This document shows, piece by piece, positions 3,001-20,210 of a DNA stretch of 64,000 nt. Below the pieces are notes generated by a model. It saw nothing but the letters and a program-made list of their open reading frames with translations, had not been told where the DNA came from and did no database searches. This DNA comes from Guillardia theta CCMP2712 (Eukaryota; Protista; Cryptophyta). Where the stretch lies: the NCBI RefSeq assembly GCF_000315625.1, contig NW_005434670.1, forward strand, positions 82,237 to 146,236. The letters run 5' to 3'. Every line of letters begins with the position of its first letter. The stretch's first letter is position 1. The translations under genes were made by a program, and so were the position numbers.

Positions 3001-4187
3001 CCTTCTCCGCGAGCTCGACAAGGAACTCGAGGGCGAGACGACGAGTAGCCGGCTCGAGGTTCCTGTTCATGGTGATGTGCTGAAGCATGGCTGAGGAGAT
3101 CTCCTGCATGGCATGTGTGAGATGTGTAGCGAGCAAGACGATAAGAAACCTTCAGCTGCGGTTTGAAGAAGCGAGGATTGACTTGAACGATCTCAATCAA
3201 TACGTCCAGGCCAGCACGCGCATTGTACTCGTCCCCTTGCACGGCTGACCCGATAGCTGCCAGCATCCTTGACAGCAGCGCCTGAGCAGGCTTCATCTGC
3301 TTGTTGGTAGAGCAAGAGGAGAGAAAGGAGGAGATGGCCTTCAACCCTGACACCTGCACGCCACAGCTGCGGTCTTGCAACGCGTTCTCAAACAGAGGAT
3401 GGAGCTCCTCGTCGAACTTCATCAGGTCGCTGCCGGCATGGCCGAGGACAAGGGAGAGCATGTAGAAGCCAAGCTCCTTCTTGTTCGAGTCCTCGTGCTT
3501 GCACATCTCATACAGGGTAGGAAGAAGTTGCGGCCACTTGCCATCGTTGGCAGCGAAGGATATCGCGCCGACAACGTTGGCGACCTTCCTTAAAAAGGGG
3601 GCAGAGGACTCTGCTTTGAGAGCATCCAGCAATCGTGATTGTAAATCTTCCTTCGTACTTGTAGAGAGTTTCTCCCAAACTTCCGATAGAGTTGATCTCG
3701 CCAGAACGGCGGCCATAGTCTTTGACTCTTCACTCTCACCCTGAGCGATCTCTTGTATCAGAGCCGTGCATGTGGCATCAGGCATTTCAGTCTTGATCTC
3801 TTCGTACTTCTTCTCGGCCTCTTTGCGGATCTCATTCTCAGAAGACATGAGGGACTTCATAAGGTCCTTCCAGTTTGAGAATGTCTGCTTCAGAAGCTGT
3901 GTATTGCCTGCATTGTCCATGCTTTCATGGGTATCGCCCGATCCTCCTCGAAGGTGCAGACAAGGATAGTGAGGTCGCTTTCTCGAGCTCAAGTAGGTAT
4001 AGTCATGCACTGCATCGCCTTCTCTCTGAACGCATTGAGATCTCAAAACCCTGGCGCTCCGCAGGTTGTACATGCGATTGAATCGTGGAGCGGAGTCATA
4101 CTGACTATGGCCAGACACCACAGGCCAACCCTTCTCCATAGTCAGGAGAGTAAGAAGCATGAGATAGAAGCCAAACGCCTTGACCAT
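1..4187 (-). CDS. IPO5: Importin-5/karyopherin beta-3 (Kap121/Pse1-like HEAT-repeat importin) with N-terminal bipartite leader; multi-exon, 3' end runs off window
   Basis: Exons translate to importin-5 hallmarks: LMSSENEIRKEAEKKYEEIK, ALDRLAVAIGG, DWRYRMCALYCISQIGEG, RVRWVAINCIGQLSTDLGP, IRGKAMECISLIGVAVG, DDPQLSY, FWYHDDVRSSA, ATDNAVASLGKI. Likely ATG 4187 (alternative 4247); GT-AG introns e.g. 3149-3104. Confidence 0.93.
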
Positions 4188-4609
4188 CTTTAACCCTGAT
4201 CGTTCCCTCCGCAAAATCTCGTACAAGTTCGAGTTCGGTCGTACCATTACGGAGGGGGGAGTATGAGTATCAGGTGTGCTTGTTGGACCTCTTGCACCGC
4301 AACTCCTCGCTTGCTCGCTGTCACTTAGCTCCTCTCACGCACCAGCCCTCCTGCTCTGGGGGCTACTCCCGGTACTTCAGCCCCTGCATCCCCGCGCCGA
4401 GGAGAGGGCGCATGCAAGCTTGTGAAAACTTCACCCAATTTTCAGGAGGGTACTTCATTGGTTTTTACTTAACATAGGATACAAACATGGATTGAATATT
4501 AGAGTAAAGATTTTGATAGAACAATGACAAGGGGTGGTAAATGATGATGTGGAGGATCTATCCTTCCTTGATGTAATTTAAATTTTAGTCAATTTTTGGT
4601 GCCAAACAC

Positions 4610-4975
4610 TCGCGGGCGCCGTCCGTCAGCGCCGGCCGGGTCACTGACCAAAGCGCGGCGGCCGCACTCCGCCCGGCCGGGTGGCGGCAATTCACTGACG
4701 AGTCCGAAGTTCGTACTGATACGGTATGATCCACCCCGAACTTCAACCGGAAGTTCGGCCCAGCGGGCACCGCCGGCCCGGCCGTCCGGGGCCCGGGCCC
4801 GGGGGGCGGGGGCCGCCGCGGCCCGGGGGCCCGGCCGGACTCGCGCGGGCCGGCGCAGTGCCGGTGAGTCGGCCCCGATCGGGCTCAAATCCGGGCCCGG
4901 GACTCTCAGACACCGACGCCGTCCGCGGGTCACCGAGCGCGGCAAGAGAGCGGCCGACACCCTGGCTGTGCCCAC
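4610..4975. repeat. GC-rich CCGG/GGCC palindrome-dense intergenic island (1 of 4)
   Basis: Abrupt switch to very high GC with dense CCGG, GGGCCC, GAGTC/GACTC and GTCAC words; lies between divergent genes; similar islands at ~17.3-17.85, 52.2-53.1 and 61.55-62.0 kb. Confidence 0.6.
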
Positions 4976-17267: not shown

Positions 17268-17850
17268 ACTTGCCGGCATGCCGGCAAGTGACTCTTGCCG
17301 AGTAAAAGTACACTTGCCCGGCGGCCGGTATGCCGGCGCCCGCCGCACTGCCGTCACTGCGCCGCCGCACTGCCGTCACTGCGCCGCCGCACTTCCGTCA
17401 CTGCGCCGCCGCAGTGCCAGGTGCCACGGTGGCGGCGGCCTCCGGGCCCGCCCGGCCGCCCGGTCACGCCCCGCCTCAGTTGCCGCAGCTGTCAGACTCG
17501 GAGTACAACTGGCCCGGCGGGGCGCGGCCGCTCAGCGGCTGCCGCGTCACGCGGCCGCCCGGCGCCGAGTCACGGAGTCTGGGCCGGCCCGGGGCTCTCG
17601 GAGTCCAGAGTCACTGGCCACCGCCGTAGTACGCACGCGGCCCGGCCTGGCGGCGGGCCGCCGCGGGGGCCGGCAGCGGCCACCGTACGCCGGCGCACGC
17701 CCCGCAGTGCCGCCGGATGAGCCCCAGTCACCGGATCGTCGGATCATGAGTCAGGATGCCAGACGGTCACCGCACCTCACCGGGTCACAGTCACTGACGG
17801 TGCGCCGGGCGGGGCCCCGGCCCGGCCGCCCGGCTCGCGGCGGGCCCCGG
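17268..17850. repeat. GC-rich island 2 with a perfect 22-bp palindrome (17268-17289) and a 22-bp tandem repeat (~3.5 copies, 17338-17413)
   Basis: ACTTGCCGGCATGCCGGCAAGT; unit GCGCCGCCGCACTGCCGTCACT repeated. Confidence 0.75.
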
Positions 17851-18942
17851 AAAGTAATCCTATCATCCCCCTCATTCTCCAGTCCTCATGTACCCCCAGT
17901 CAGAGCTCAAGTACCCTTGCTTTAGTGGGAAAATACCGGTAATGCAGGGTTGCGGATCCTCTTTTGCCTCGGTGGGTGGTGCCATGTCAAGGGTGGGTTG
18001 ATGAAATGTTGCTTGTTCTCAAGGTGGGTACCCTACTACAGAATATTCTTAAGTTCTTACATATGTAATTTGATATACATGTTACCCTGGGCTCTGAAAC
18101 TTTGACCATGAGCTGTCACGGGTAGGGGTGATCAATAGATTGGGGTGGGGTATTCCGACGGTTTCAAATTGGCGATTATGCGGCCCGTAATGGCGAGGGA
18201 GCGGGTAGAGAAGAGAAGGTGGAGGGGGAGAGAAAATGCTAAGTAAGAATGACAGAGGAGAAAAGGAGGATACAACTTAGATGACCATGTGGATAATTGG
18301 TGTGACAGACAAACAGTAAACCGACCAACATACACAAGTCCGGTAAAACAGAGGAAAGGTTGGTTTGGTTGCGAGGGAGAAGGAACCGTAGAGCCATGCA
18401 TGCCAAGTGAAGTTACCATCATGATGATATGACTAGTTTATCAAGACATGTTCAACGTTAGGCAGAGGAAAGGCAAATAGCAGGACTGTGTGAAGGTTGT
18501 AAGACAGTGAGACAGGATGAATGTGGAAACGCAAGGAATCTTTCAATATGAGGATGAACTAAAAGAAAAAAACAAATTGATAGACGAGAAACAGAAGATG
18601 AAGAAAGCGTGGTTGGAAAGTTTTCTTTACTCTCGCATTTTCTCTCGTAGGATTCTTCAGTTCGATAACGAAATCCTAAACATTTTTATTTGGATCACAA
18701 GGATAAGTGTACTATATGTTTTAATGATATTCTCCTGCTTTCAGGTTAGAAGATTCGGAAAAATACGGGTGCTTACAGGTATTCAAAAGAAAGAAGCACG
18801 TTTTGCTTGTTTTCGACTGACATTGAGAGTGACAGTTATGGGATCAAGGGCGGCACAAATAATCTAAAGTTGATCTACACCCTCAGCTTCATACCGCATC
18901 GATATACTTGCTACTGCAACTTGACTTGATCAACTTTCAATC

Positions 18943-20210
18943 ATGAGAGGATTGAGAATCTTTCTGGGGACCTTGCTCCTCCTACAGCTGTTCGTTTCCT
19001 CCACGTCTGCTCTCCGACCCGTTGATCTCGGCAAGCATGCCGTGCCAAAAAGCCGCAAATCACGCCACGGCCCTCGTGCTGATCTCTCGCTTCGTCTGAG
19101 GGGAGGGCAGGATGCAGGAGAGAAGAAGGAAGCAACAGAGAAGAAAGAAGAGGTGAATATTGTCTGGGGTCCGCCTCCATTCTGCTCTTCTTTTCTCTGT
19201 TTCTGTTGTTCTTTCTTTCTCCTTGTCGATCGTTTCCTTTGATCTGCAGCTATTTCTCAATCTCACTGTTATCCTCCCATCTGCCTCTCCTTCACTCTCT
19301 CACTCTCCTTTCCGACCGAATCCCTCCTCACTCTCTCTTCCAGGGTGCCAAGGTGAAGAAGCCACGTGACCCCAACACAAAGTCAAAGACGCGTTCCACC
19401 CGTGCTGGCCTTCAGTTTCCTGTAGGAAGGATCCACAGATTCATCAAGCGTAGAGCCCAAGGCGTGAGAATTGCAGGCGGAGCTGCTGTGTACCTGGCAG
19501 CTGTGCTGGAGTATCTCACTGCGGAGGTAAGCATTGACTGGATGTGCGGGCATGAGGGAGGAGTTTACACAGCTTTTTGATATCTGCGCGATCTTCTAGC
19601 ATCAAAAGCTCTGTAGCTGAAATGCCTAAGTTGTACGCCAAGCAAGGAAAGAGAGATGTAGAAGCGGGGGAGGAGGGAGGTTGTGTTTAGTAGGGCGTGA
19701 GTGGATAGGGGCCGAATGCAGGGACAAGAAAAGAAAATGTGGGAGAAGAGAAAGCTGTGCAAGGAGCAAACGAGGACATTGACTCGTCGGCAGGTGCTCG
19801 AGCTTGCCGGAAACGCTGCAAGGGACAACAAGAAGACGAGGTAGTAAAGAACATGCTGATCACCTGCTGGGAGGTGCTGACCAGAAGAATCAACAGGATC
19901 ATTCCTCGTCACATCCAGCTTGCCATCAGGAACGACGAGGAGCTGAACAAGTTGCTGGGACATGTGAGATGATGGAGGAACGAGGGTGAGACTGGGGATT
20001 GATGGAGGAGTAGGTTACCATCGCTGCTGGAGGCGTCCTTCCAAACATTCACAGCGCTCTTCTTCCGAAAGATGTAAGTTTGTTGGACTGGGTGAACTGT
20101 ACTGATGTTGAGAGCATTAGAGCGGGAAGGGGGAGAAGAAGGATCATGGAGACAAGGGTGATCACGGAGATAAGGCTGAGCAAGCGGAGAAGGCGGAAGC
20201 AGCGAAATGA
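18943..20210 (+). CDS. H2A: Histone H2A with signal peptide + transit-like leader (putative nucleomorph-targeted H2A); 6 exons
   Basis: Exons 18943-19152, 19344-19526, 19794-19840, 19897-19963, 20014-20073, 20121-20210 join in frame: [17 protein letters not shown]...[66 protein letters not shown]. Leader [23 protein letters not shown]...LRLRGG. Confidence 0.95.

Follow-up and report, generated by a model that had tools for sequence, protein, structure and literature searches.

In a 64,000-nucleotide stretch of the genome of the cryptophyte Guillardia theta CCMP2712 (contig NW_005434670.1, positions 82,237 to 146,236 of the forward strand; hereafter the window), two unrelated genes, one for an importin-5 and one for the nucleomorph histone H2A, carry import leaders that end in the motif LxLRGG. 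The motif very likely marks cargo of the periplastid compartment, which is what remains of the cytoplasm of an engulfed red alga, and of the nucleomorph, the remainder of its nucleus; the leader is likely cut after the diglycine. It reads as a processing site and marker, not as a required import signal. On balance we favour a model in which the motif ends the transit-peptide-like (TPL) part of the leader and is cut by a ubiquitin- or ubiquitin-like (Ubl)-type cysteine protease in the periplastid compartment.

Two leaders with one layout

As the first-pass annotation of the window had proposed, the two genes share one leader layout, a signal peptide followed by a basic linker and LxLRGG, in frame both times. 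That this feature is real in both genes is near certain. The six frames of the window hold LHLRGG at 3959-3942 (minus strand) and LRLRGG at 19090-19107 (plus strand), and no other LxLRGG word. Signal peptides and cleavage sites were assigned with a hydrophobicity rule and visual inspection; by that rule a hydrophobic stretch follows the Met in importin-5, H2A and their orthologues. The features are as follows, a slash marking a predicted cut.

4110..4187, minus strand: importin-5 predicted signal peptide, 26 aa, likely cut VSG/H (sequence; orthologues have one at the same place)
3960..4109, minus strand: importin-5 basic TPL linker, 50 aa, unalignable across species (sequence comparison)
3942..3959, minus strand: importin-5 LHLRGG, ubiquitin-tail-like motif, predicted cut GG/S (LxLRGG kept in 6/7 orthologue clusters)
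292..3941, minus strand: mature coding region of importin-5 (IPO5/RanBP5), six introns, extending below 292 (Pfam, RNA joints, open frame)
18943..19011, plus strand: H2A predicted signal peptide, 23 aa, TSA/L (sequence; bipartite leader in PMC5443833)
19012..19089, plus strand: H2A basic linker, 26 aa (sequence)
19090..19107, plus strand: H2A LRLRGG, matching ubiquitin residues 71-76 exactly, predicted cut GG/Q (kept in Hanusia phi and an MMETSP orthologue)
19108..20210, plus strand: mature nucleomorph H2A, five introns (P0157 = EKX53926; antibody localisation, PMC5443833)

The importin-5 gene starts at ATG 4187, with an additional in-frame ATG at 4247; its linker has a net charge of about +5 and the motif occupies residues 77-82. 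Its identity is given by Pfam TPR_IPO5 (E 5e-23). The gene is expressed: in spliced RNA contigs from three studies, a single stretch without splicing (3149 to about 4410-4420) covers leader and motif. The same contigs place six GT-AG introns downstream of the leader, and the exons joined from coordinates give a stop-free frame of 1077 aa. Raw 2026 RNA reads on importin-5 numbered only 4, from which no transcription start is derivable. The genome holds three further importin-like loci, all more distant. In six orthologue clusters, including that of Hanusia phi, the spacing between LxLRGG and the first repeat is constant, whereas the leader sequence upstream of the motif is unalignable. Ordinary importin-5 proteins start 7-25 residues past the position of the motif and lack it. 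One orthologue (P0007) has a tandem motif in its leader (ERLRGG, LALRGG).

The H2A start codon is at 18943, and residues 50-55 form the motif. The annotated 218-aa protein EKX53926 of G. theta CCMP2712, to which the window H2A is identical, maps to six exons with a coding sequence at 18943-20210. Antibody work has placed this leader-bearing H2A in the nucleomorph, and its bipartite leader is already published (PMC5443833). An initial homologue search gave mainly animal histones; a search centred on the leader then yielded two orthologues, both of which keep LRLRGG. An atlas search with the H2A leader gave no usable match.

At the likeliest signal-peptide cuts, judged by eye, the +1 residue is His in importin-5 and Leu in H2A, of which Leu can permit stromal import in diatoms. 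The Phe, Tyr or Trp at +1 of stromal (ASAFAP) leaders is absent from both at these cuts, whereas it is present in two light-harvesting complex (LHC) genes of the window. The use of these LHC leaders as an internal control holds up, as both have Phe at +1 and neither contains LRGG.

21103..21185, minus strand: LHC control leader exon, ATG 21185, SAAA/FAP, Phe +1, without LRGG
23402..23522, plus strand: second LHC control leader, ATG 23402, SASA/FMP, Phe +1, without LRGG

The first-pass annotation also had the conserved domain follow shortly after the motif. The domain does lie downstream in importin-5 and H2A, but it begins about 15-30 residues past the GG and not immediately. Two assembly N gaps (13053-13757 and 15807-15906) lie between importin-5 and H2A and touch neither gene; sequence continuity across them is therefore irrelevant.

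Position of the motif in the genome

By chance 1.9 LxLRGG words are expected in the 64-kb window and 2 were observed, so that the frequency in the window is at chance level; the position of the motif after a signal peptide is non-random. In the genome searched (87.1 Mb, 669 contigs), the motif counts exceeded those of reversed-pattern controls modestly (353 vs 255; 701 vs 617). Given the chance level in the window and this modest excess, raw counts were dropped as evidence and a position test was used instead, in which a site scored if an in-frame Met and a signal-peptide-like stretch lay upstream (random background 3.4%). Among the first 30 genomic sites of each type, a signal peptide was found upstream of 17 LRLRGG-type sites but of none of the LRLRGA-type controls (p=6e-7). 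By extrapolation, the LRLRGG-type spelling alone may occur in roughly 130-260 genes, with the reversed control suggesting a floor of about 100. The commonest cryptophyte form is LRLRGG, all six ubiquitin residues.

The motif and the periplastid compartment

Proteins of known or predicted location were compared using the supplements of the ASAFind 2 paper (PMC12136025). LRGG ends the leader in all six G. theta periplastid proteins verified with green fluorescent protein (GFP), namely UGGT, EF-1a, 14-3-3, RRM1, cyclophilin (CyP) and Ubc8, and is present in at most 2 of the 101 entries of the cryptophyte plastid set (p about 2e-8). The leader of periplastid Cdc48 likewise ends in LRGG, and the ER (endoplasmic reticulum) and secretory signal-peptide proteins of the ASAFind 2 list (DnaJ, trypsin-like, glutaredoxin) lack it. 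Were the motif a reason for the original choice of the six, this comparison would be circular, and the motif would not be new. The ASAFind 2 paper contains these sequences and makes no mention of it. These data support the earlier claim that the motif belongs to periplastid and nucleomorph leaders and not to stromal ones. One plastid-set entry, the fructose-1,6-bisphosphatase XP_005839318.1 (PMC12136025 Appendix S9), combines LRLRGG with a non-aromatic residue at +1 and is probably periplastid instead.

A related form is found in diatoms. By an eye count, about 7 of 21 periplastid homologues in Thalassiosira pseudonana show xRGG, in degenerate form, ahead of the mature domain: Der1-1, TrxH, Sec14, both Cdc48, PUB and ptDUP.

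The periplastid ubiquitin precursor of G. theta, gt_155024 (PMC12136025 Appendix S3), consists of a signal peptide, a degenerate ubiquitin-like unit ending in VRGG, and ubiquitin. As this precursor joins its units at VRGG, we infer that a GG-cutting activity must exist in the compartment. The precursor also offers a conceivable model of how the motif arose.

Evidence for cleavage after the diglycine

The residue after the GG is free, with 10 kinds in 17 sites and no Pro, which is not significant at this sample size. The net charge changes across the site from +1.4 before to -1.1 after. In EF-1a, the predicted cut GG/GKEK would give a near-usual EF-1a start. The most direct evidence comes from model 21460 of T. 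pseudonana, a homologue of ptDUP, which reads IPRGG/SDSDSFTQQR. In the N-terminomics of Huesgen 2013, SDSDSFTQQR was found at position 233 in two acetylated spectra and zero dimethylated ones; by our count this start is residue 233 in model 21460 too. Since the peptide was acetylated in vivo, the digest cut only after Arg and no Met precedes it, SDSDSFTQQR is a proteolytic mature N-terminus right after the GG. Of the seven diatom RGG cases, ptDUP alone had an ArgC peptide of detectable length. None of the others turned up in the N-terminomics tables, two of which are cut short, and as their predicted peptides are too short or too long, this absence is uninformative. The first-pass interpretation is supported in part: the in-vivo N-terminus of one diatom protein, ptDUP, lies exactly after RGG, at the degenerate PRGG, while the deubiquitinase proposed to make the cut is hypothetical.

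The first-pass annotation went further in calling the motif part of a targeting system, which was overstated. Diatom reporters without any RGG still enter the periplastid compartment (PMC3017844), and the motif is missing from numerous diatom residents, making it unnecessary for import.

In the model we favour, the precursor would enter the ER by its signal peptide, as is established, and then pass the periplastid membrane via SELMA, an ERAD-like machinery specific to the symbiont, as in the established model; the lack of an aromatic +1 residue, by the established rule, would retain it in the periplastid compartment. There a resident protease would cleave past the diglycine and free the mature protein, for which the diatom ptDUP offers an in-vivo case. 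Membrane crossing would be independent of the motif.

Candidate proteases

A 'TPL peptidase' has been postulated but not named (PMC5756292). In the model above it would most likely be a cysteine protease of the ubiquitin/Ubl-deconjugating type acting on a bare tail peptide, with a nucleomorph ZUFSP/UFSP-like open reading frame (ORF) placed first and a host-encoded USP, such as a leader-bearing USP14/Ubp6, second. Typical deubiquitinases (DUBs) require folded ubiquitin and leave RLRGG peptides uncut (PMC5824887), so only an atypical, peptide-cutting DUB fits. The catalytic cores of the ZUFSP family cleave RLRGG peptides efficiently (PMC5824887, PMC8776766), and a zinc-finger/UFSP-domain homologue, Gt2_270 and its orthologues, is reported as a putative DUB in all four nucleomorph genomes (PMC6559170). 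This ORF is the leading candidate, from literature only. A ubiquitin-type peptidase as a class is a somewhat favoured candidate for the cut; that the nucleomorph ZUFSP-like enzyme in particular makes it is doubtful.

Among 30 USP loci screened in the genome, one (L073:75-1821; G000:C13:4682-9475) has a signal peptide, LSLRGG, a Ubl domain followed by a long insertion, and a catalytic exon with an intact catalytic Cys box that is closest to USP14/Ubp6. Its exon join is inferred. An orthologue keeps the signal peptide and has LHLRGG. Ubp6 normally acts on the proteasome. The leader-bearing gene is a candidate periplastid DUB, second-placed. Cryptophytes have no orthologue of ptDUP, the DUB known from the periplastid compartment of diatoms (PMC12412216). 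Further peptidase loci listed in the genome belong to the UCH (C12), Ulp (C48) and C78 groups. Spread over many small contigs are about 15 Ulp1-like (Peptidase_C48) matches, near-identical and weak, that lie in long open frames and probably belong to a mobile element.

Alternative explanations

Several observations weigh against cleavage by a ubiquitin-type protease as we propose it. The only N-terminus directly observed after RGG is that of one diatom protein with the degenerate PRGG, and cryptophytes have yielded none. The seventh importin orthologue cluster has LSLRGD in place of LxLRGG, hemE and iddi of G. theta, given as periplastid without a GFP test, lack the motif, and so do about two thirds of the diatom periplastid homologues. 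The nucleomorph ZUFSP-like ORF was assigned via remote homology (PMC6559170). Characterised ZUFSPs require both arginines, RxRGG (PMC5824887, PMC8776766), which are found in H2A and in the commonest genomic form; importin-5 has His in place of the first, which most of its orthologues lack as well, with Val, Thr, Ser or Ala there. Diatoms, without a nucleomorph, need another enzyme.

The cut after RGG might instead be made by a dedicated TPL peptidase unrelated to DUBs, the likeness to ubiquitin being convergent or the relic of a ubiquitin-fusion leader. In favour of such an enzyme, the common denominator of cryptophytes and diatoms is merely RGG, typical DUBs ignore the RLRGG peptide, and ptDUP is missing in cryptophytes. 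However, the commonest cryptophyte form matches six ubiquitin residues, beyond what a generic need for RGG would call for, and ubiquitin occurs in the periplastid compartment in a version of its own, next to at least one leader-bearing USP. We hold this explanation to be unlikely. A role chiefly in binding or sorting, such as docking to SELMA or to the ubiquitin pathway and retaining the protein, with cleavage incidental or nearby, would suit the strict link to periplastid over stromal cargo. The residues between GG and domain are also poorly conserved in H2A and importin-5, and the domain start does not force an exact cut. It is nevertheless quite improbable, as reporters without RGG arrive and remain in the compartment, the diatom N-terminus lies exactly after the GG, and the free residue that follows resembles a P1' position.

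That the motif is a general secretory or ER mark, a chance word or an RGG-methylation word and plays no part in import is far less probable still. Raw counts are only modestly above the reversed controls and location is known for few of the 17 genomic sites, but the GA control gave 0/30, ER and secretory signal-peptide proteins are without the motif, and it is carried by a histone, an importin, EF-1a, 14-3-3 and Cdc48, none with an ER-lumen role. This reading is largely refuted.

As an extension of the favoured model, cleavage by a ubiquitin-type protease may also be one case of a wider pattern, in which a bare ubiquitin tail is the general periplastid leader-removal site in complex red plastids, served in cryptophytes by a symbiont-compartment ubiquitin-type peptidase, perhaps the ZUFSP-like enzyme of the nucleomorph, and present in degenerate form in diatoms; we put this forward tentatively and with some doubt.

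Novelty and significance

The bipartite leader, the +1 rule, SELMA and nucleomorph H2A are already known. The first-pass annotation had left novelty to a literature check, and the searchable full-text literature gave no account of a conserved LRGG leader end; a passing earlier remark is possible but rather unlikely. A fixed cut site makes the leader-removing enzyme directly testable with a peptide substrate and a short list of candidate proteases. The motif also provides a specific marker of the periplastid proteome, which in G. theta is estimated at about 2,400 proteins and whose present prediction is based mainly on the missing aromatic residue. Present in both cryptophytes and diatoms, it offers a new character with which to trace how red complex plastids evolved. 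If the general reading of the ubiquitin tail were true, the postulated TPL peptidase would be identified, and a descent of the leaders from ubiquitin fusions suggested.

Among the unexpected cargo flagged by the motif is importin-5 itself. The nucleomorph is reported to be without a canonical nuclear pore complex (PMC6411479), and a conserved leader-bearing importin-5 (292-4187, minus strand) would imply karyopherin-mediated nucleomorph import.

Other genes in the window

At 53274-53750 (plus strand) the window encodes a signal-peptide protein with a long leader and ARGG near the predicted signal cut, without LRGG; its exon 1 has no Pfam match. A four-repeat ion channel at 54558-60152 (minus strand; Pfam Ion_trans, E 8e-140) is an intronless open frame of 1865 aa, unusual for this intron-rich genome, and an ATG22-like vacuolar efflux transporter lies at 38538-39233 (minus strand; Pfam E 1e-41).

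Comparison with known systems

The leaders of importin-5 and H2A share with the periplastid bipartite leaders of cryptophytes and diatoms, which follow the SELMA route, a signal peptide and a basic TPL linker, and, at the cuts judged likeliest by eye, a non-aromatic +1 residue, with H2A as a published example (PMC5443833). Sequence conservation has been described as absent from those leaders, for which only a postulated peptidase is on record, whereas here they have a fixed six-residue end. Removal of a transit peptide after import is also the task of the stromal processing peptidase of complex plastids (PMC3774753), which differs in its loose consensus, its place in the stroma, its Phe(+1) cargo and the absence of a diglycine.

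The junction itself is of the ubiquitin-fusion type, exact as LRLRGG in H2A and, with one residue changed, as LHLRGG in importin-5. In ubiquitin-fusion precursors (polyubiquitin, Ub-S27a, Ub-L40; algal fusions in PMC6332867) the partner is likewise freed after LRLRGG with a free next residue, as is predicted here. In those precursors the ubiquitin fold precedes the junction, whereas here the tail stands alone on an organelle import leader: neither first exon gave a ubiquitin family match for a folded 76-aa ubiquitin before the motif, and the H2A linker is merely 26 aa.

On the enzyme side, the core of ZUFSP/ZUP1/Mug105 cuts the bare RLRGG peptide without folded ubiquitin (PMC5824887, PMC8776766). 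Unlike the enzyme proposed here, these proteases act naturally on ubiquitin chains, with both arginines required, and have no known role as leader peptidases. Coronavirus PLpro, a DUB of the USP fold, matures the viral polyprotein by cutting at LxGG sites, which are short mimics of the ubiquitin tail. Its activity on peptides is mentioned in PMC8776766. PLpro acts on a viral polyprotein with few sites, whereas the motif described here would serve protein import in a cell, for which roughly 100-260 cargos are predicted.

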